Positions 3,093 through 24,899 of a stretch of 64,000 bases of DNA are shown here, one piece after another. The notes beneath the pieces are model-generated. The model saw nothing but the letters and a program-made list of their open reading frames with translations, was not told where the DNA came from and did not search any database. Numbering within the stretch: the stretch's first letter is position 1; every line of letters starts with the position of its first letter. Source of the stretch: Tubulanus polymorphus (taxonomy: Eukaryota; Animalia; Nemertea). The translations under genes were made by a program, and so were the position numbers. Where the stretch lies: NCBI RefSeq assembly GCF_964204645.1, contig NC_134031.1:186001-250000 (forward strand), given 5' to 3'.

Positions 3093-6000
3093 ATAGTACC
3101 AGGGATACTATGCTAGGGACAACAGTTCACCTCCAAACTTCTAATGCGAGCCCCTGTGACTGATAATAAATACTCAATAATTGCTAGCACATTATAACTA
3201 GCTAGAAATACTTGCTCAACTCAAGGAAACATTTCAAATTTTTGTATCACGAATCTGCTGTATTTGTTCCAGGATGAAGAAAGTTTAAGTTCTGACGATG
3301 GAGAGTATGAACCTGTTGATGTCGTTCCCATGACGATCGCTCAGCTAGCAGACGTTACTCCGGATGAACAGATTTACTCCGATGTAATTTACTCCGACTC
3401 CGTGACGCAATTAAACAACAATCGATCATCATCCACGGCGACAATTATTGATAAACTCACGGCTAAACATCAATTTGATTCATCGGAGAAAAAATCAAAA
3501 ACGTCCTGGTTCATGAGTCGATTTATGAGAGGTGATATAAACTCATCGAGTTCCAGATCGACTGGTATAAACTCATCGAGTTCCAGATCGACTGATATAA
3601 ACTCATCGAGTTCCAGATCGACTGATATAAACTCATCGAGTTCCAGATCGACTGATAAAAACTCATTGAGTTCAGAGACTGAAATACTGAGTAAAACTCG
3701 AAGTTCATCTGTGCCAAATATATCTCCATCAGTTTCACCTCGATTGGATCATCATACAGCTCCAGATCAGTCCCCTTCTTCACCCCCTGATCAGCCCCCT
3801 TCTTTACCCCCTGATCAGCCCCCTTCACCCCCTGATCAGCCTCCCTGTTCACCCCCAGATCATTCCCCTTCTTCACCCCCTGACCAGTCATCTGATCAGC
3901 CCCCCTGTTTGCCCCCTAGAGGTGCCCTAACTGCTGAAAATAGCCCAAAACTTCCACCCCGTAAATCTAGTCCTGATGCATCTCCACTGGACATCAGTCC
4001 GATAACGACCCCGTGTGCGGGAACCAGTCCGAGCGGAACTCTACGTTCAGGAGGAACCAGTCCGATCCCTCCACTTCGGCGACCTAGAACATCGGATATT
4101 ACATCAAATACACTAGTGCCCCCTAGTGGTGGTTTAAATAGGTTAGTACTACATGGTTTATCTCTGTCTGTCTCTGTTTGTCAGATATAAATCTATAATA
4201 TTTGAATTTATTACAGCTGTTTTAAACTATTGGTGGCTGGTTATAGATGAATGTAAGGCTCAATGTTGCATGTTGTTTTATCATCACAGTGTGTATTCTG
4301 TTGTATTTACTGTGCAGGGTCTGGGATCGATACGAGATTTTTGTAATTAATTTATTCTGGAACAGTGAAATAGATCTCTCAGAATCCAGATTCTTGTGTT
4401 AATATTAGTTATACTTGTTTTGCATGATGATTTAGTATTAAACACTGTAGTGAGACTCAGTTTAATGTGTCCGTCCATACTGTAGTGAGACTCAGTTTAA
4501 TGTGTCCGTCCACACTGTAGTGAGACTCAGTTTAATGTGTCCGTCCACACTGTAGTGAGACTCAGTTTAATGTGTCCGTCCATACTGTAGTGAGACTCAG
4601 TTTAATGTGTCCGTCCACACTGTAGTGAGACTCAGTTTAATGTGTCCGTCCACGCTGTAGTGAGACTCAGTTTAATGTGTCCGTCCATACTGTAGTGAGA
4701 CTCAGTTTAATGTGTCCGTCCACACTGTAGTGAGACTCAGTTTAATGTGTCCGTCCACGCTGTAGTGAGACTCAGTTTAATGTGTCTCTTTCACCTGAAG
4801 AGTTGCACTGTTTACTGGTTTCAACATGCATGTTATATCAGGCAGATAATTACGGCTTATTTTGTTCATATTTCGTTTGGTTTTATATTTGTGAATTGAC
4901 ACAACTGACTGTTGATTGGACTGGATTAGCTAAATACTAGTTTTTGATAATCTGTAGTGAGAAGAGGATCTCCAGCACCAGCAGCAGCAGCAGTACTGGT
5001 ACCGGTACCGGTAATATTGATATGTTATATTTATCTCCACCAGTTCCACCTAAAACCAGTAAAACCAGTGAGTTTTCCATCTTAATTAATATTAATCATC
5101 AAACTCTGAATTACATATCGTATAATTTGTGACCCAACTATTTCAGGGCCGTCGCTGAATAGTGTGCCACTAGCTCCATCTATAGTTGGTAAGTTAAACC
5201 TCTACGTCTATCTGTCTCCGTGTACACTATAGGGTTACGATATATGATTGTGTTTGGATGTTTCAGTAGATGAAAGATTATACTATGTTCCACCTGATGG
5301 AGGAGTATCGGTATTTGTTGATAAACATGGATATATTGATATGGATCAACAAAAACCCGACAATGATGAATACCTGGACATGTGTGGAGCAGGTCGACAG
5401 GCTGATGAGTACCTGGACATGTCTGGAGCAGGTCGACAGGCTGAAGAGTACCTAGACATGTCTGGAGCAGGTCGACAGGCTGATGAGTACCTGGACATGT
5501 CTGGAGCAGGTCGACAGGCTGAAGAGTACCTAGACATGTCTGGAGCAGGTCGACAGGCTGAAGAGTACCTAGACATGTCTGGAGCAGGTCGACAGGCTGA
5601 TGAGTACCTAGACATGTCTGGAGCAGGTCGACAGGCTGAAGAGTACCTGGACATGTCTGGAGCAGGTCGACAGGCTGATGAGTACCTAGACATGTCTGGA
5701 GCAGGTCGACAGGCTGATGAGTACCTGGACATGTCTGGAGCAGGTCGACAGGCTGATGAGTACCTAGATATGGATCAACAATCAAAACTGAACAACAATA
5801 AACCGATAAATCTCCATGGCGACGATGGTTATATCGATATGGATGAAACGGTCAGGAATAAACACAACAGGTGGCGCTCATATCTATATTACTAAAACTA
5901 AACCGATTGATTTTAGACACTACAGTGTTTTAATTGAATGTTTATAATGTTACAGCGGGAGCAGTGAGGATTATATACATCCTGAATGTATCAACAATAA

Positions 6001-9724: not shown

Positions 9725-10429
9725 ACGTTGGTCAGGATCCAGTTCTACAGTTGTGGGTCCAGTTTCTGTGATTTAGGTTTAACTGAGTTAAAATCATTTA
9801 ATTGTTATAACTGCGAAGTGAAATCCTGTAGGGTTCTCCTGTTGGGTTTTCCTGTAGGGTTCTGTTGGGTTCTCCTGTAGGGTTCTCCTGTAGGGTTCTC
9901 CTGTTGGGTTCTCCTGTAGGGTTCTGTAGGGTTCTCTGAGTAGAGATCAGGATGTTTGTTCTGTTTATACATACATGTACCGTATATAGGCCGATCCTCA
10001 CATACAAATATTTATTGATTTGTTATAAAATGTATTAAAGTCTAAATAATTCGAATCAATTGTAATTAATTTATCTCTGAAACTATTGATGAAAGTATTA
10101 ATGTTATATTGTGATAAACATTGATTAAAGATGTATAAATATAGATATTATTGTAATGTATGGGGGATTGGGGTGAGAGGGGAGGGGGGGGGTTGAATGC
10201 CCCACTGTAATCTATGGGGGGAGGTGGGTTGATTGTTTTGGAAACAGTAATTCAAATTGATCCTAGGTTCAAACCCAGTATATTTTGTATATTTTTGAAA
10301 TCTATTCAAATCTATTTTAAAAAATATTTCTAGATTTTTCTATTTTAGATTTAAGTATTATTAATTTGCACTTTGTGTGTTTTATATTGGATGATTTTAT
10401 AAATAAATTCTAAATACATTTCAATTGTT

Positions 10430-13350
10430 CATTTGAACCCAGTTATTACTGACACTAATTCATTCAGAGTTGATCCTGATGCTGAATAGAGGATGTACAG
10501 GGGTGTCCCTGGTTCGAACCCAGAAGTTACTGATACTGGTTCAGAGTGATACTGATGCTGAATAGAGGATGAACACACGTGTCCGACGAGGAGAGGATAT
10601 CAAGATTTCCTAACGTTATCGCCATCTATTGGAATTTTGCTGAACTGACTAGTTAGCTCTTACTCGTCTCACTGAGTCTTCTTTAATCCGTTAGAATCAC
10701 ACTCGCCATCTGGTGGATATAACCATCATTAAACTGTAGTAGCATAGAAATACACCAGATGGCGAGTGTGATTTCAACCCACTGAAGAAGACTCAGTGAG
10801 ACGAGTAAGAGCTATCTATTCAGTTCAGCCAAATTCCAATAGATGGCAATCATAGCATTATTATTCTATGCAGTAGAGTAATAAAATTATCTTATCTTAT
10901 CTTATCTTATCTCATTAAAGAAGACTCAGTGAGACGAGTAAGAGCAATCTAGTCAGTTCAGCCAAATTCCAATAGATGGCGATCATAGCATCATTATTCT
11001 ATGTACCAAAAGTTTTGGTTAGAGTGTAATAAACTATTTTATCTTATCTTATCTTATCTTAAACTAAGCGGATGTCCCGGGTTCGAACCCGATAATTACT
11101 GACACTGATTCAGAGTGGTCCTGATGCTGAAAAGAGGATGTACAGGGGTGTCCCGGGTTCATACCCAGTAATTACTGACACTGATTCAGAGTGGTCTTGA
11201 TGCTGAATAGAGGATGTACAGGGGTGTCACGGGTTCGAACCCAGAAGTTACTGATACTGGTTCAGAGTGGTCCTGATGCTGAATAGAGGATGTACACACG
11301 TGTACAACGAGGAGAGGATATCAAGATTTCCTAACGTTATCGCCATCTATTGGAATTTGGCTGAACTGACTAGTTAGCTCTTACTCGTCTCACTGAGTCT
11401 TCTTTAATCCGTTAGAATCACACTCGCCATCTGGTGGATATAACCATCATTAAATTGTAGTAGCATAGAAATACACCAGATGGCGAGTGTGATTTCAACC
11501 CACTGAAGAAGACTCAGTGAGACGAGTAAGAGCTATCTAGTCAGTTCAGCCAAATTCCAATAGATGGCGATCATAGCATTATTATTCTATGCACCAAAAC
11601 TTTTGGTTAGAGTGTAATAAACTATCTTATCTTATCTTATCTTAAACTAAGCGGATGTCCCGGGTTCGAACCCGATAATTACTGACACTGATTCAGAGTG
11701 GTACTGAAGCTGAATGGATGATATAGAGGGGTGTCCCGGGTTCGAACCCAGTAATTACTGACACTGATTCAGAGTGGTCTTGATGCTGAATAGAGGATAG
11801 GATGTACAGGGGTGTCCCGGGTTCGAACCCAGAAGTTACTGATACTGGTTCAGAGTGATACTGATGCTGAATAGAGGATGAACACACGTGTCCGACGAGG
11901 AGAGGATATCAAGATTTCCTAACGTTATCGCCATCTATTGGAATTTGGCTGAACTGACTAGTTAGCTCTTACTCGTCTCACTGAGTCTTCTTTAATCCGT
12001 TAGAATCACACTCGCCATCTGGTGGATATAACCATCATTAAACTGTAGTAGCATAGAAATACACCAGATGGCGAGTGTGATTTCAACCCACTGAAGAAGA
12101 CTCAGTGAGACGAGTAAGAGCTATCTAGTCAGTTCAGCCAAATTCCAATAGATGGCGATCATAGCATTATTATTCTATGCAGTAGAGTAATAAAATTATC
12201 TTATCTTATCTTATCTTATCTCATGAAAGAAGACTCAGTGAGACGAGTAAGAGCAATCTAGTCAGTTTAGCCAAATTCCAATAGATGGCGATCATAGCAT
12301 CATTATTCTATGTACCAAAAGTTTTGGTTAGAGTGTAATAAACTATTTTATCTTATCTTATCTTATCTTAAACTAAGCGGATGTCCCGGGTTCGAACCCG
12401 ATAATTACTGACACTGATTCAGAGTGGTCCTGATGCTGAAAAGAGGATGTACAGGGGTGTCCCGGGTTCATACCCAGTAATTACTGACACTGATTCAGAT
12501 TTATCCTGATGCTGAATGAGGATGTACAGGGGTGTCCCGGGTTTGAACTCAGTAATTACCAGAGTGTGATTTCAACACAGTCCCTCAATTAATTAATTTT
12601 TAAAATATACAATTAACAATTAACTATTTAAAAAAAGTTTCTATTTCCCTCATTGTGAACTTAGGTAATAATACGTATCGATGAGACCCATTCCCAGAAT
12701 TAGGCCCAGTTACACAGGGCCAAATTCTGACTATCTTACGGGAACTGCTGTTAGACTCAAAGCTTTTTTATGACAATATATTGTTTTTAGAAATATGGAT
12801 ACTATTCTGTATTGTTCAACGAATTTGTACTATACTCTATTCAAAAAAAGTTTATATTTTCCTCATTGTGAACTTAGGTAATTCATCTACATCTGTCGCA
12901 ACGCTACCGAATAAAGCGGCGTGTACCGGATAAATAAACGATTTGTGTAAAAAAAACAACAATTCAGCAGTCAACTAATAAAAGAAAAACCTTTGCAATC
13001 ACTGTATGAACACCTCAGCGGCCGCAAAAATATACCCGGCGGGATTCGATCCTGCGACCTGCACCATGGTAGTCATGCACGCTAACCACTAGACCACTGA
13101 ATTGTAACGGTTAGGATAGTTTGTGAATACGTCCGGTCAGTGTGCTGTGCTGACCAGTCGATACCATAATTACCAAGTTATTCTTTATTACACGTATCGA
13201 TAACATGTCATTGCACGGCATTCCGGCATTCCCTAGTGATTCAAAATTATCCTGATGCTGAATAGATGATGTACAGGGGTGTCCCGGGTTCGAACCCAGT
13301 AATTACTGACACTGATTCAGAGTGGTCCTGATGCAGAATAGAGGATGTAA
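10430..13350. repeat. Composite higher-order repeat: 76-bp B-box-containing units, three 233-bp palindromes and (TTATC)n tracts; 1309-bp periodicity
   Basis: 76-bp unit gtacaggggtgtcccGGGTTCGAACCCagtaattactgacactgattcagagtggtcctgatgctgaatagaggat. Palindromes at 10618-10850, 11339-11571 and 11927-12159; extra right arms at ~10920-10983 and ~12229-12292. Block 10571-11170 recurs at +1309. Confidence 0.92.
13034..13103 (-). pseudogene. tRNA-derived sequence (SINE head or tRNA pseudogene)
   Basis: Minus strand reads aattcagTGGTCTAGTGGttagcgtgcatgactACCatggtgcaggtcgcaGGATCGAATCCcgccgggtat. A box and B box are at tRNA spacing, but the acceptor stem does not pair well. Confidence 0.7.
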
Positions 13351-13515
13351 AAGTGTTATTAAAATTCTCCCGTGCGGCGCAAATGGGAGGAAAATGCATC
13401 AAAGAAGATGATAAGTGTCCCGCTGCCCGGGAGGCCGGTTGATCGGGAGATGCTGCCCTCTACTGGCGAATTGGTTTTTTATTGTGGCTTCAGCTGAAGA
13501 ACTTTGCTTTCCAAG

Positions 13516-16500
13516 ATGTCAGCGACCATGGATGACGAAAATGTACAGGAAACAGATTTATATGGGTGTTTGGGTATATTTAAAGAGGTAAAGGTGTTAA
13601 AATGTTACTTTCAGAAATCTATAGATAGTTATGAATTACAATATTGACGGTTAAAACCGATGATCGCTATGGTAACGCCTATCGGACACCTGTCAGTGTC
13701 GATTATCAATCAATTCAATGTCGATCAAGATTTATTTATTCTCAAACTTTGGTTTAGGCTTCGACTGAAGAAATCAATAACGCGTTTCGTCGTTTGAGTC
13801 GAATGTATCATCCTGATAAACACATAGAACCAGATCGCAAACAGAAAGCTGTTTTAATGTTTAATAAAATCAAATACGCTCATGAAAGTAAGTAAAGTCT
13901 GTCCGTCTGCCCGGCGTCCTGCTGGGTGAGTCAGGGAATGATCACTAGGGGGCAGCACGTATATCTCTCAGTCTATTCTCTATTGTAGTATTAATGGACC
14001 CTTATAAACGAGCGATCTATGACACCCTCGGATTGAAAGCATTAGAAACAGAGAGTTGGGAGGTATGTTTTACCGCGGCACCCCCCTTCCGGGATAGCAG
14101 CTAACAGACACCCTCCCCCTTCCGGGATAGCAGCTAACAGACACCCTCCCCCTTCCGGGATAGCAGCTAACAGACCCCCTCCCCCTTCCGGGATAGCAGC
14201 TAACAGACACCCTCCCCCTTCCGGGATAGCAGCTAACAGACACCTTCCCCCTTCTGGGATAGCAGCTAACAGACACCCTCCACCTTCCGGGATAGCAGCT
14301 AACAGACACCCTCCCCCTTCCGGGATAGCAGCTAACAGACCCCCTCCCCCTTCCGGGATAGCAGCTAACAGACCCCCTCCCCCTTCCATGATAGCAGCTA
14401 ACAGACCCCCTCCCCTTCCGGGATAGCAGCTAACAGACACCCTCCCCCTTCCGGGATAGCAGCTAACAGACACCCTCCCCTGGATAGCAGCTAACAGACC
14501 CCCCAATACCAGATAGGGGCTAACAGACACCCAACCTCCACCGGTATGTCATGCAATAAAACAATTGTTTTTTCAGATTGTTGCTAGGCGACAAACTCCG
14601 CAGGAAATCCGAGAGGAATACGAAAGATTATTGATTGAGAGAGAGGAACGAAGATTAAATCAACGAACTAATCCTAAGGTTTAATTCTAATCCTAGTTTA
14701 ATTCTAGTGTTTATAGTGTATTTTACTGTAAGGTAATGATGTATGATTTCAGGGTTCTATAACAGTAGGAATCGATGCTACCGATTTATTTGATCGTTAC
14801 GTCGACCAGTACAGTGGCGCCACCGCTGCTGCAGGTTCTGAATTACCAACTATTGAAGTCAGTAGTATGTCTATATCACAGTCTATTGACTGTCCGTTAA
14901 CCAATCAGGATACAGCGATTTTAGGAGGCAATTTATCCACTCACAACGGAACTGGTTCAGGAACGATAACGGCTTCAAGCAGACGCATTCTATCTGATAA
15001 AGGATGGGCCGAGGTTAGTGAGAGATTGAGATATCTGATGAGAGTTTGATCGAGATATCTGATGACAGGTTGATCGAGATATCCGATGAGAGTTTGATCG
15101 AGATATCCGATGAGAGTTTGATTGAGATATCTGATGAGAGTTTGATTGAGATATCTGATGAGAGTTTGATCGAGATATCTGATATTTATTATTGATATTG
15201 ATGAATTATTTGTCCACAGTTAGAAGTATCGGCTGGTAACGGACCTATGATTCATTTAAAAGGTTTTCGGACATTCACTAAACATCTGTAAGTTATAATC
15301 GATCAGATTTACGTTAATTATTGAATATTTAACGAGTATTGTTAATTGTTGTAGTTAATTGTTATAGATTTGGAACGATGTCAGGATTTTTACAGTTTTC
15401 TCGAGGTGGAATTCAGCCCGGTGTTTCTACCAGTAAGTCGTCCACACTCCGTTCAATCTTCAATTCTATAAGGAGTAATAAATCAATGAATTGTGATTTG
15501 TTATTGTTTCAGTGTTCGCCGCTCAATTAGATAAATCTCTTCAAGGTCGAATATCTATAAATCTAGGATTAATGACCTCTATAACGACGACTGTTGTTCA
15601 TGATTATAAAGATAATCATTTAGTTTTTGGAATTCAGGTAAAAATCAATAATCCCCAAATCACTGTTATAATTATACGCCTTGTTGGTAACTATAGTAAC
15701 CATCTGTTACAGTTAGGAATACCGAATTCATTTGTAACGGCCGGATATACCAGACGATTCCCGCAACAAGAGGCTAAGATTAAACTAGCTTTAAAGTAAG
15801 TGAAAGTTAACTAAATTGTCGGTTTGAATTCTGTGATACCTGATTGTTTAAACGGTCGTTTTGTTAACGCGATTGTTTGAATGGTTGTTATGGCAACACG
15901 ATTGTTTAAGCGGTTGTTATGGCAACACGATTGTTTAAGCGGTTGTTATGGTAACTCGATTGTTTAAGCGGTTGTTATGGCAACACGATTGTTTAAGCGG
16001 TTGTTATGGTAACTCGATTGTTTAAGCGGTTGTTATGGTAACACGATTGTTTAAACGGTTGTTATGGTTACTTTAGATTCGGAACATTCGGAGGAATAGT
16101 TGAATACGGAGCTGAAAAGAAAGTTTCACAGTTTAGTGTTTTAGGAGCTCATGTTGTTATCGGAGTCCCCACAGGAGTTCTACTGAAAATCAAGTACAGT
16201 TTAAAACTTCACGTTTCACCGCTGTCCGTCGTTGATATGGTTACCGGTATAACTGTTTATATTGTTGTAGATTACACCGTGGAAACCAGACGTATAATTT
16301 TCCGATTCATTTATCGGAATCAATGAATCCGACGGCGATCTTCTACGGTACTCTCGTCCCATTGGTCGCTTTCATAGTCGTTAAAAATCTGCTGATTAAA
16401 CCGTTTTTAGAACAACAACGTGAAAGGTACGACTAGTGGCGCAGTACTGTGGCGGTATTGTGAACTAGAAAACAGCCTGCTTCATGCGTTTCACTTGTGT

Positions 16501-22109: not shown

Positions 22110-24146
22110 TTATTTATATCGATATTTTTTAACGCAGTCGTTGCCGAGGTCGACAACAATGACGTGTCCGTCGCTAAGACACGATAATCCGCTCGGTCGT
22201 TTCAGTTTATCGTCGTTACTGTCGATATTAAACGCGTGTTTCCCGTCCGAACCAAACACCTGAACGAAACTCCGCCCCTTTTCTGTACGAGTGGCTAAAA
22301 CAGCTCCCGATTGGTCGACGGTTACTCCTCCGTATTGACCTTTAGTATTATTAGACTCTGATATTATTTGTTTGATATATTTACCGTCTCGTGTAAACAC
22401 CTGTAATCTGTTATCGGCAACAATGATCTCGTCTCTAACGGTTACAGCCATCGAACTGATTAGTTTAAATTGTCCCGGTTTATCTCCTTTGATTCCTATT
22501 TTACTGATTAAACGACCGTTAGGTGTAAACACCAGTAATTTACCGATACCGTTATCAGCGACTATAATCTCACCTCGACTGCTTACGGCTACGTTTATCG
22601 GCTCCACAAATTCGGCAGACGTGAATCTCTGAATTTGTTCTCCGTTTCGCGAGATCTCCGTGATATGTTTAGTACGCCAGTTGACCACTAGGAGGTTACC
22701 GGTAGGTGTCATGGTGATACCCGTACCGCTCTGATGTTCCAGTCCGGTATCCGTGATATGATGTTGAAATGTTAATTCCGCGTTCAGTATTTTGATACGA
22801 CTGTTACCCGTATCTAACACGTATATATTATCGTCGCTATCGGTTACCACATTAACCGGTTGTATAAAGTTTAAACCGTTCGATCCTCTCGTTCCTAGTT
22901 TATAAATCGGGTTGTTATGTTGCGATATATTGATAATAAACGGACTTTCTTTAATCGGTCGATCGAAGATATTGATATTGAGAGTATGTTTACCTCCCGC
23001 TAGAGGAGTATAACAGATTTTATATGTTCCGTCGTCGCAGTCCGTTACTTTCACCGGAATCAGTTCATTTCTCTCGTTTCTTAATTCTACGACGATCGGA
23101 TCACCGCCGGTAGTACGAGGGTTACCGTGGTAATCTACCGTCGATACGTGTACCGTTGATCGTAGATGCGTTACGGCTGATCTGATTTGAGCGAATGAGA
23201 GCGCCGGGTAAGTTGTACTGATACGGATACGACCGAACGAGTTTAAACCGGTTATAATTCCCTGTAACGCCGTATTGTGTTTAAACTCGAATCGTAAGAA
23301 CGCGTTCTCGCGAGGTTCCGATAATAAACTCAACGCGTCCAGTTTCTCGTTTAAATCTCCGATTTTCTTCGTGATATTTCGAACTTCAACTTGATATTGC
23401 AAACCTTCGCATTCGTTTTGAACTTTAGATTTTTCGGCTTGTATCAAATCGAGTTGTTCTTTCAGACATTTTTTCTTGTCTTCGCGTAGTTTTCGACACA
23501 TTTGTAAAACGTCGTGACGTCTTTTATCGACCGTGTTGATTAAATCCTGAAATGTGCGATCGATAGCTTCCATCGTTTTATCGACGTTCGAGTCTAATTT
23601 CGTCATCTCGTCACTAACTATTTCACACGCGTTGTTTAAATTATGGATACATAAATGTGCTTTATACAGTAATATTTCCGACATACGTTTAATAGCGATA
23701 GAGAAAGGAATAACGGTATGTTCGAGGGCTCCGCGTCCGTTATGAGTTCCGCCCGTACATAGCGTGCAGAATACAGTATCGCACGACTCGCAGAATAATA
23801 ATTCCTGATTAGAATGATTCGAACATTTCGGGATGACGTCTCGTCGCTGAGACGCCATTAAATCTAGTAGTTGATTAACGATGAAACTAGGGGGCAGCGC
23901 GGTCACTCCTCCGCGAGGTATCGTGATAGTCTCGCGACATATCGGACATCGAAACGTTCCCGTATCTCGTACCTGTGATTCGGCGATACGAATTAAACAG
24001 TTTTTACAGACGGTGTGCGAACACGTGAGTAGTTTAGGCGTGTGCTCTCCGCTATCGTACTGACATAAACACGTTCCGCACGTCAGGAAACTATCGTTGA
24101 AATCCTCATAGTTTATGGACACGGTTTCTACGAGCGTAGACGACAT
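22110..24146 (-). CDS. TRIM-NHL E3 ligase (RING, B-box, coiled coil, filamin, NHL repeats), TRIM2/3-like invertebrate subfamily; 678 aa in one coding exon
   Basis: Uninterrupted ORF from ATG 24146 (MSSTLVETVSINYEDF). RING CGTC...CSHTVCKNC...CPIC; B-box CSNH...FCESCDTVFCTLC...H; filamin-type VDYHGNPRTTGGD...DGTYKICYTP...HTLNI; NHL repeats (PVNVVTDSDDNIYVLDTGNSRI, PSGLSCLSDGHVIVVDLGNDCV). An acceptor (tttcAG) precedes 24154, so upstream exon(s) exist. Confidence 0.95.
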   Translation of the reverse strand: MSSTLVETVSINYEDFNDSFLTCGTCLCQYDSGEHTPKLLTCSHTVCKNCLIRIAESQVRDTGTFRCPICRETITIPRGGVTALPPSFIVNQLLDLMASQRRDVIPKCSNHSNQELLFCESCDTVFCTLCTGGTHNGRGALEHTVIPFSIAIKRMSEILLYKAHLCIHNLNNACEIVSDEMTKLDSNVDKTMEAIDRTFQDLINTVDKRRHDVLQMCRKLREDKKKCLKEQLDLIQAEKSKVQNECEGLQYQVEVRNITKKIGDLNEKLDALSLLSEPRENAFLRFEFKHNTALQGIITGLNSFGRIRISTTYPALSFAQIRSAVTHLRSTVHVSTVDYHGNPRTTGGDPIVVELRNERNELIPVKVTDCDDGTYKICYTPLAGGKHTLNINIFDRPIKESPFIINISQHNNPIYKLGTRGSNGLNFIQPVNVVTDSDDNIYVLDTGNSRIKILNAELTFQHHITDTGLEHQSGTGITMTPTGNLLVVNWRTKHITEISRNGEQIQRFTSAEFVEPINVAVSSRGEIIVADNGIGKLLVFTPNGRLISKIGIKGDKPGQFKLISSMAVTVRDEIIVADNRLQVFTRDGKYIKQIISESNNTKGQYGGVTVDQSGAVLATRTEKGRSFVQVFGSDGKHAFNIDSNDDKLKRPSGLSCLSDGHVIVVDLGNDCVKKYRYK

Positions 24147-24899
24147 TCCAGATTCTGAAACGATACAAAATATAGAAAACAATTAATCATAGAATGAGCA
24201 CATCGGGCACACCTCAGAGTACACGCCCTAGTATTCAGGGCACACGCCCTAGCATTCAGGGCTCACGTCCTAGTATTCAGGGCACACGTCCTAGTATTCA
24301 GAGCACACGTCCGAGTATTCAGGGAACACGTCTTATCACTCAGATCTGCACACCTCAGGTTCAGTTTTAAATGAAACCACATTTTTGAAAAGAGGTTTTT
24401 GATACAGTAGCGTAGGATAGAAGAATGTGTTAGCAGGAATGTAATTATATTTGATTGAGGAGATGGTAAGGGGTAGAGGGAGGGATAGCACACAGTGAGA
24501 CAGGTGTAGAGGGAGGGATAGCACACAGTGAGACAGGTGTAGAATACAAACAGGTTATTACTGTACACAGTGAGAAACTGTTTAAACACCTACTCAGTAT
24601 TGATAACAATCGCATGAGGAGCTCAAGGAGGATGAGGAGCTCAAGGAGGAGGAGGAGCTCAAGGAGGATGATGTTGACGATGATGTAGAGGATGACAAGG
24701 ATGAGTTGGTTTTGATAATTCACCAGTAGCTCCCACCTCCTCGTCGCCGACCCAAGTCAGAGATAGTACGCTGGATTCATACAATGTGTGCAATCTGATT
24801 TTATTTTGTTTATCAATAATTATTTGGTTTATTCTATTTCATTGAATTAATGTTTAGAATTTCAATCAGCTCAAACAGTCAGTCAAGCTAGTGGTCAGT

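Follow-up and report, generated by a model that had tools for sequence, protein, structure and literature searches.

Does the repeat array that separates two neighbouring genes near the end of a nemertean chromosome, and that is studded with motifs resembling the binding site of CTCF, constitute a boundary assembled for these genes, or is it one copy of a repeat family in which such motifs are built in? The array lies on chromosome C7 of Tubulanus polymorphus, within a stretch of 64,000 nucleotides (C7:186001-250000, hereafter the window) located 0.2 Mb from the chromosome end. As the original prediction had it, the array is preceded by the 3' end of a RhoGEF gene, recognisable by its RhoGEF and SH3 exons, and followed by the start of DNAJC11, whose beta-barrel exon is found at 14867-15049; the whole intergenic gap between the two is occupied by the array. 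The window also carries a TRIM2/3-like ORF.

The structure described for positions 10430-13350 was re-found from the sequence and comprises three 233-bp palindromes, two extra arms (both of them right arms), about 11 units of a 76-bp satellite (sat76), and 14 CTCF-like sites (Table 1). Each palindrome is composed of 101-nt arms, complementary to each other at 89-92 %, around a 31-nt loop, and the single-stranded fold, computed for one hairpin, reaches -103 kcal/mol (z = -24.5 against shuffles). Pairwise identity among the three palindromes amounts to 98-99.6 %, which indicates that the array is very young. The higher-order units measure 721, 588, and 722 bp, and as the first unit matches the third at 98.5 % identity, the last growth step was a duplication of ~1.3 kb. 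The proposed origin by tandem amplification is thereby borne out, both by the repeat structure and by the near-identical higher-order units. A degenerate tRNA-like piece (minus strand, ~13020-13100) was seen in the patchwork of other repeats that interrupts the array; its identity as a tRNA was dropped, as ARAGORN and Rfam found nothing.

Table 1. Features of the array between RhoGEF and DNAJC11, in window coordinates (strand of individual CTCF-like sites in brackets).
Position	Strand	Feature
10432-10575	+	Partial sat76 unit and one sat76 unit; B-box-like word 10511-10521
10576-10617	+	42-bp linker (Y flank), precedes the hairpin at almost all family loci
10618-10850	.	Hairpin 1; CTCF-like sites 10620-10632 (-), 10704-10716 (-), 10752-10764 (+), 10836-10848 (+)
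10851-10913	+	Short tail; (TTATC)5 microsatellite at 10887-10912
10914-10983	+	Extra partial right arm with one outer site, 10969-10981
10984-11072	+	Tail (X flank) with (TTATC)n, runs into satellite
11073-11296	+	Three sat76 units
11297-11338	+	Linker (Y flank)
11339-11571	.	Hairpin 2; sites 11341-11353 (-), 11425-11437 (-), 11473-11485 (+), 11557-11569 (+)
11572-11654	+	Tail (X flank) with (TTATC)n
11656-11880	+	Three sat76 units, period 76-81
11885-11926	+	Linker (Y flank)
11927-12159	.	Hairpin 3; sites 11929-11941 (-), 12013-12025 (-), 12061-12073 (+), 12145-12157 (+)
12160-12222	+	Short tail; (TTATC)5 at 12196-12221
12223-12292	+	Second extra partial right arm with one outer site, 12278-12290
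12293-12381	+	Tail (X flank) with (TTATC)n
12382-12560	+	sat76, ~2.4 units, ends mid-unit
12561-13246	.	686-bp patchwork of other subtelomeric repeats, interrupts a sat76 unit; outside the hairpin/satellite family
13247-13349	+	Rest of interrupted sat76 array, ~1.3 units; B-box word 13287-13297

Each hairpin arm contains two blocks built around CCANNAGATGGCG. The outer site reads CCAATAGATGGCG, while the inner word takes two forms, CCACCAGATGGCG on the minus strand and ACACCAGATGGCG on the plus strand, each present three times; CCAATAGATGGC occurs 8 times in the window against 0.01 expected. The sites were judged by consensus matching only, without a position weight matrix, and the strict consensus CCASYAGRKGGCR is matched by 3 of the 14, namely the minus-strand inner ones, the remaining 11 being one base off. 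Every motif count far exceeds the shuffled expectation; however, the copies are repeats of one another, so that the independent events come down to one hairpin design and one satellite unit instead of 14. The divergent orientation of the sites is an automatic consequence of the palindrome.

An 11-finger CTCF orthologue, the gene on whose presence the original prediction depended, was located in the T. polymorphus genome with a 33-place degenerate pattern. It lies at C3:3430661 and is colinear with residues 267-376 and 380-520 of human CTCF; when its second exon was compared with the PDB, CTCF came out on top with one uninterrupted match of 204 bits. Genome-wide, the strict CTCF consensus occurs 3,915 times compared with 35 for the reversed control (~110-fold) and is carried by several repeat families, and CCACCAGATGGCG is found 633 times, mostly as scattered single sites, versus 0 in the control. 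Since the inner block of the arm is identical to one of the most over-represented CTCF-type words of a genome that also encodes the CTCF orthologue, binding of the blocks by CTCF seems probable, and on balance we lean towards regarding them as putative CTCF sites. The conserved blocks span 25-37 nt, exceeding the length of the CTCF core, and may be read by another or an additional factor. As a lead only, TCAGTTCAG, situated 7 nt before the outer core, resembles the upstream module of the vertebrate two-part CTCF motif.

Within the hairpin, conservation is highest in the motif blocks, whether loci are compared or a ~70%-identical subfamily is considered. Across loci, where copies within arrays are not independent of each other, divergence is 0.018-0.021 per motif column compared with 0.060-0.063 for the remaining hairpin columns (permutation p = 0.003-0.005), and common variants are ~4-fold depleted in motif columns (p = 1e-46). 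In the subfamily, 46 of 52 motif columns are kept, versus 116 of 186 others (p = 1.6e-4). Furthermore, in 15 arms from 10 single-copy loci, the choice of which ignored the inner motif, the mismatch rate is 0.041 in inner-motif columns and 0.126 in the mid-arm, whose divergence is partly subfamily polymorphism (p = 1.9e-4); the strict consensus is still fitted by 11 of these 15 arms. Singleton mutations, only 51 events in total, hit motif columns about as often as other positions (0.42 versus 0.53 per column, p = 0.31), and hence the constraint seems to be mainly a property of amplified lineages. It looks as if it acts chiefly on the lineages undergoing amplification and gives individual copies far less protection.

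The suggestion of a genome-wide repeat cassette was borne out by the genome search, which returned at least 119 candidate hairpin places and at least 807 of the 76-bp satellite, with 317 matches to the terminal 19-mer of the hairpin arm against 1 in the control. Full-length hairpin copies of 88-94 % identity reside in arrays on C1, C4, C5, C10, C11, and unplaced contigs. The order satellite-linker-hairpin-tail-satellite is fixed at every array examined, the hairpin was never seen without its constant flanks, and its orientation within satellite arrays is always the same. Less than 1 Mb from a chromosome end lie 20 of 52 hairpin loci (8.8 % expected, p = 6e-9) and 17 of 35 satellite loci (p = 1e-9); short arrays and single copies are also present inside chromosomes. 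At several loci, the satellite forms head-to-tail arrays with shared units, the higher-order periods of which vary from ~370 to 750 bp. Single copies lacking satellite arrays have in common a ~600-bp unit, 74-80 % identical, one end of which coincides with the hairpin and the other lies ~370 bp away, and the family also includes centrally deleted mini-hairpins. No target-site duplication was evident around the hairpin, nor around the ~600-bp unit in the seven single copies examined, and the family yielded no terminal repeats beyond the palindrome. Likewise, the edges of the arrays have no non-satellite termini in common, as arrays start and stop at varying points of the unit.

We therefore consider it likely that the array is a local expansion of a composite repeat family enriched near chromosome ends, in which CTCF-type motifs are built in and the B-box is a passenger. 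The family consists of the 233-bp palindromic cassette with its constant flanks, embedded in short arrays of the 76-bp satellite, and the ~600-bp single copies within chromosomes represent an older, dispersed form. Unequal crossing-over may have enlarged the array, and exchange between chromosome ends may have spread it. The motifs would then belong to the repeat itself, as opposed to forming a boundary put together for RhoGEF and DNAJC11, and a chromatin effect at this locus, if any, would be a by-product. As judged from its sequence, the array is a repeat-borne cluster of probable CTCF sites.

Repeats of this kind have mammalian counterparts. DXZ4, FIRRE, and D4Z4 are macrosatellites carrying CTCF sites, and in these as well as in the rodent SINE B2, the CTCF-type motif is part of the repeat consensus and is multiplied by copying, as we propose here. 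Mammalian CTCF-bearing repeats also form clusters in tandem arrays, some of them near chromosome ends. In contrast, the carrier in T. polymorphus is a 233-bp palindrome within a 76-bp satellite and belongs to a nemertean. Head-to-tail units, variable higher-order periods, and enrichment within 1-2 Mb of chromosome ends are shared with subtelomeric composite satellites, from which the T. polymorphus family differs in that its higher-order unit holds a long palindrome of the perfect type in which protein-motif blocks are conserved, and in that it extends to the inside of chromosomes as short arrays and single copies.

A further-reaching possibility, which we regard as rather doubtful, is that the palindromic repeat disperses CTCF sites as pre-formed divergent pairs across subtelomeric DNA, where CTCF would shape domains or protect neighbouring genes. 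If true, this would represent an independent invertebrate parallel to the rodent SINE B2 wave, and the 25-37-nt blocks would correspond to the complete footprint left by the 11-finger protein. CTCF and 3D genome organisation have hardly been explored in Spiralia, and no orientation-dependent CTCF looping has been demonstrated in this group (PMC10658182).

The blocks built around CCANNAGATGGCG could instead be terminal and subterminal transposase or recombinase sites of a MITE- or foldback-like element, their likeness to CTCF sites being coincidental. The outer block indeed sits at the extreme end of the arm, and a second, subterminal copy points the same way, an arrangement known from hAT- or CACTA-type ends; where the interior differs between subfamilies, the blocks persist, and the constraint is seen in shared, not in private, variants. 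Long inverted arms, dispersed single copies, and centrally deleted derivatives are equally typical of MITE and foldback non-autonomous elements, and the adjoining microsatellite and tandem core repeats recall the satellite-carrying elements of bivalves, namely the pearl/Helentron-associated repeats. However, the family differs from all of these in that neither a target-site duplication nor a terminal signature was found, and its hairpin is always accompanied by constant flanks. The inner word, moreover, recurs across the genome mostly as single sites outside the family, the whole degenerate CTCF consensus is ~110-fold enriched, and of 7 variant inner sites in single copies, 3 remain compatible with this consensus (CCACTAG..., ...AGGTGG..., ...GGCA). 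A transposon signal thus appears unlikely.

It is more improbable still that the array was retained as a host insulator, in which a cluster of divergent CTCF sites, alone or together with TFIIIC, keeps the RhoGEF 3' end apart from the DNAJC11 promoter. Complete occupation of the intergenic gap, a CTCF gene in the genome, conservation of the motif blocks, and divergent orientation of the sites would all agree with such a role; yet the divergence comes automatically with the palindrome, units of 98-99.6 % identity point to a very young array, and the motifs show no deficit of singleton mutations. The claim that the array was purpose-built for the RhoGEF/DNAJC11 pair finds no support, as the same composite is found at dozens of unrelated, mostly subtelomeric loci with any neighbours. 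In addition, in the only spiralian for which chromatin accessibility has been profiled, CTCF motifs stand mostly alone and at promoters and are devoid of a directional pattern (PMC7854359).

Even less credit can be given to a Pol III/TFIIIC element, in which tRNA-derived 76-bp units would be bound by TFIIIC at their B-boxes and serve as a boundary in the manner of tRNA genes and ETC sites of yeast and mammals. The B-box word GGTTCGANNCC is present in 8 of the ~11 sat76 units of the window, in accordance with its predicted occurrence in most units, and was scored on both strands, as GGGTTCGAACCC is its own reverse complement. Many units hence share the B-box consensus word with these TFIIIC-dependent boundaries; the unit also has the length of a tRNA, a partial A-box-like word (CAGAGTGG) was spotted by eye ~47 bp upstream of the next B-box, and in older single copies a T-run follows a related T-arm-like word. 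Nevertheless, ARAGORN returned 0 genes and Rfam no tRNA, whether the gathering threshold or a cut-off of E <= 10 was applied, so that sat76 differs from tRNA genes and ETC sites in that no tRNA-like structure was detected. Nor is the B-box preferentially conserved: at 0.930 compared with 0.942 for the rest of the unit, it ranks only 51st among 76 windows, and 108 of 250 monomers (43 %) retain it genome-wide. The Pol III/TFIIIC half of the original prediction is not upheld, and we read GGGTTCGAACCC as a passenger word of the satellite. Weak matches to miRNA precursors, the only ones that Rfam gave, were rejected, since any long hairpin produces them. Finally, although assemblies are prone to errors at palindromes and in subtelomeric repeats, a long-read mis-assembly as the source of the palindromes and their repetition is very improbable, given that the hairpin occurs with its own substitutions at >50 separate places on 10 chromosomes and unplaced contigs, including old single copies of 74-80 % identity.

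For the RhoGEF/DNAJC11 locus, our analysis calls for caution, as it harbours a young copy of a common repeat and no evidence of a purpose-built boundary. At the level of the genome, the presence of a CTCF gene, the ~110-fold excess of its consensus, and the several repeat families carrying it make T. polymorphus a natural system in which to ask if sites of architectural proteins can be seeded by repeats outside mammals. Within this system, the palindromic family is a clean test object, offering two kinds of sites in known orientation and in dozens of near-identical copies, while its older single copies let the decay of the motifs be measured.

The array between RhoGEF and DNAJC11 is probably a composite subtelomeric repeat that has expanded locally and recently, and the repeat's palindromic cassette appears from its sequence to carry built-in motif blocks that CTCF probably binds. 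Three palindromes and two extra arms had been claimed at 10430-13350, and repeat finding recovered them all. In each 233-bp palindrome (hairpin), which bears two inner and two outer CTCF-like sites, the arms are 89-92% complementary; pairwise identity among the three is 98-99.6%, and one of them, folded as single-stranded DNA, reached -103 kcal/mol (z = -24.5 against shuffles). Tandem Repeats Finder and a component map delimit ~11 copies of a 76-bp satellite unit (sat76), which surround and separate the hairpins. The array units measure 721, 588 and 722 bp, and the 98.5% identity between the first and the third shows that the latest step was a tandem duplication of ~1.3 kb, which bears out the amplification proposed in the original prediction.

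Features of the array, its surroundings and related loci (plain coordinates count within the window; C1, C3 and C10 are T. polymorphus contigs)
Feature	Position	Strand	Details
Strict CTCF consensus match	4117-4129	-	
RhoGEF and SH3 exons	upstream of array		
Minisatellite	9824-9936		13-bp unit; after RhoGEF stop
Palindrome 1	10618-10850		101-nt arms, 31-nt loop; repeat finding
Extra right arm	10914-10983		repeat finding
Palindrome 2	11339-11571		101-nt arms, 31-nt loop; repeat finding
Palindrome 3	11927-12159		101-nt arms, 31-nt loop; repeat finding
Extra right arm	12223-12292		repeat finding
Unrelated subtelomeric repeats (686-bp patch)	12561-13246		splits one sat76 unit
sat76 array after patch	13247-13349		continuation
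Strict CTCF consensus match CCAGTAGAGGGCA	13454-13466	-	single, non-repeat
Minisatellite	14082-14499		33-bp unit, 12.8 copies; inside DNAJC11
DNAJC11 beta-barrel exon	14867-15049		
TRIM2/3-type gene	22110-24182	-	intronless, 690 aa; RING, B-box, filamin, NHL repeats
CTCF orthologue (L043)	C3:3429161-3432192		11 C2H2 fingers, three exons
Regularly spaced CCAATAGATGGCG	C1:274954-277590; C3:1958845-1964934; C10:11723437-11727760; C10:12079074-12088984		

Both flanking genes named in the original prediction were confirmed by exon matches, and the window (C7:186001-250000) lies ~0.2 Mb from a chromosome end in a 268-Mb genome. Minisatellites abound throughout, with many more farther downstream, and the long ORFs of the six-frame list are mostly their translations. 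The TRIM2/3-type protein shares 76% identity with that of Lineus longissimus and ~65% with those of molluscs, brachiopods and annelids. Within the 686-bp patch, a 106-bp piece (~13039-13144) overlaps a minus-strand degenerate tRNA-like sequence with a T-run behind it; copies of this piece with 76-79% identity occur at >25 places, mostly near chromosome ends (C10 13.7-14.2 Mb, C4 27.1-27.3 Mb, C7 21.2 Mb, C1 31.8 Mb); furthermore, a relative of a patch piece adjoins the hairpin copy on C66.

As for a genome-wide cassette, which had been raised as a possibility, genome searches placed the hairpin at at least 119 candidate places and a sat76 dimer at no fewer than 807. Full-length hairpin copies (88-94% identity) form arrays on C1, C4, C5, C10, C11 and unplaced contigs, and the arm-terminal 19-mer gave 317 matches against 1 for its reversed control. 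Every mapped array has the same order and orientation, namely sat76, a 42-bp linker, hairpin, a tail with, in many cases, (TTATC)n at its end, and sat76, with higher-order periods of ~370 to 750 bp; no common non-satellite terminus was found at array edges. The family is concentrated towards chromosome ends, with 20 of 52 hairpin loci <1 Mb away (8.8% expected, p = 6e-9), and sat76 loci lying within 1 Mb in 17 and within 2.5 Mb in 31 of 35 cases. Regular spacings of the outer word CCAATAGATGGCG (~287 bp, 1.5 kb, 1.4 kb) at loci on C1, C3 and C10 suggest more tandem arrays with the hairpin arm or a related repeat.

The terminal 19-mer also uncovered single hairpins deep within chromosomes, free of surrounding sat76 arrays. 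Seven single-copy loci share a ~600-bp unit at 74-80% identity; a hairpin forms one of its ends, and the ~370 bp to one side of the hairpin take in a single sat76-like unit as well as a T-run preceded by a T-arm-like word. Centrally deleted derivatives occur as well, with 76 or ~146 bp between the outer sites. In single copies L045-L060 (on C1, C2, C3, C4 and C11), the 31-nt loop sits, with respect to the constant flank, in the opposite orientation to that in the subtelomeric array subfamily, so that this flip/flop tracks subfamily. No target-site duplication was seen around the old single copies, among which no autonomous partner came to light.

All 14 predicted CTCF-like sites are present in the window, but when judged by matching to the strict consensus CCASYAGRKGGCR, only three conform, these being the minus-strand inner sites (CCACCAGATGGCG) among the six inner ones; the three plus-strand inner sites read ACACCAGATGGCG. 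The outer sites (CCAATAGATGGC) occur eight times against 0.01 expected; since the sites are all copies of one another, their excess over shuffles reflects repetition rather than 14 independent motif events. A CTCF gene, on whose existence the prediction depended, is present: a degenerate conserved-finger pattern hit one place in the genome (C3:3430661), where the first exon encodes a long low-complexity N-terminal stretch and then fingers 1-4, and the other two encode fingers 5-9 and 10-11. Exons 1 and 2 align to human CTCF residues 267-376 and, in one stretch, 380-520, and the top Protein Data Bank match for exon 2 is CTCF (204 bits, E = 1e-59). Comparisons of individual fingers with fly and human CTCF, and the resemblance of the motif blocks to the two-part CTCF motif, we take as presumptive leads only. 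Genome-wide, there are 3,915 matches to the strict consensus against 35 for its reversed control, 633 to the inner word CCACCAGATGGCG against 0, most of them isolated sites dispersed outside the family, and 382 to the outer word against 4. Given the gene and the excess of consensus and inner word, the inner sites are, as sequences, good candidate CTCF sites. The outer count is close to that of the terminal 19-mers, so that most copies appear to belong to the family and related arrays; we regard the outer sites as family-specific variants and candidate CTCF sites of uncertain competence. On C1, strict-consensus sites are ~3-fold denser in the first megabase (21) than over the next 12 Mb (~6.5 per Mb). 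The CCAGTAGAGGGCA site precedes the start codon of DNAJC11 (13517) by ~50 bp. CTCF orthologues have been published for molluscs, annelids and rotifers (PMC10658182); most CTCF motifs of the annelid Dimorphilus stand alone, at promoters and without directional pattern (PMC7854359), and the one promoter-proximal motif before DNAJC11 matches that pattern.

The motifs vary less than their surroundings. Across 55 full hairpin copies from 15 loci, those within arrays being non-independent, divergence per column was 0.018-0.021 in motifs and 0.060-0.063 elsewhere (permutation p = 0.003-0.005), the outer sites being the least variable 13-mers. A subfamily at C7:3.54 Mb (~70% identical) kept 46 of 52 motif columns versus 116 of 186 others (p = 1.6e-4), its identical runs of 10-20 nt being motif-centred. 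Ten old single-copy loci supplied 15 arms, picked via the outer word and thus unbiased for the inner motif; here mismatch was 0.041 in the inner motif and 0.126 mid-arm (p = 1.9e-4), and the strict consensus is still matched by 11 of the 15 inner sites, as it is by three of the seven variant ones. Among 128 arms, shared variants are ~4-fold depleted in motif columns (p = 1e-46), whereas singleton variants, the best reflection of mutation after copying, are not depleted (0.42 in motif columns versus 0.53 in the others; p = 0.31, with just 51 events). We read this as motifs required in, or strongly favoured among, lineages that get amplified, while any protection of individual copies would be at best weak. 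Sites for a transposase would likewise fit this split between shared and private variants and would suit the terminal position of the blocks, but they leave the abundance of the inner word and of the whole degenerate consensus outside the family unexplained, and we consider them improbable.

Somewhat less probable still is an insulator selected for the RhoGEF/DNAJC11 pair, given a ubiquitous cassette, a young array, and the fact that divergent sites arise automatically in any palindrome. A Pol III/TFIIIC boundary is decidedly unlikely: the B-box word GGTTCGANNCC is indeed found in eight sat76 units of the window (scored on both strands, as GGGTTCGAACCC is its own reverse complement), but the TFIIIC half of the prediction went unsupported. 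Only 108 of 250 full-length monomers keep the word, B-box columns are no better conserved than the rest of sat76 (0.930 versus 0.942 in 314 monomers from 26 loci, the B-box segment ranking 51st of 76), and neither ARAGORN nor Rfam, even at E <= 10, detected a tRNA. That the array is an assembly artefact is very unlikely indeed. With the local expansion of a subtelomeric cassette as the favoured reading, a boundary effect at RhoGEF/DNAJC11, if any, would be a by-product of repeat expansion.
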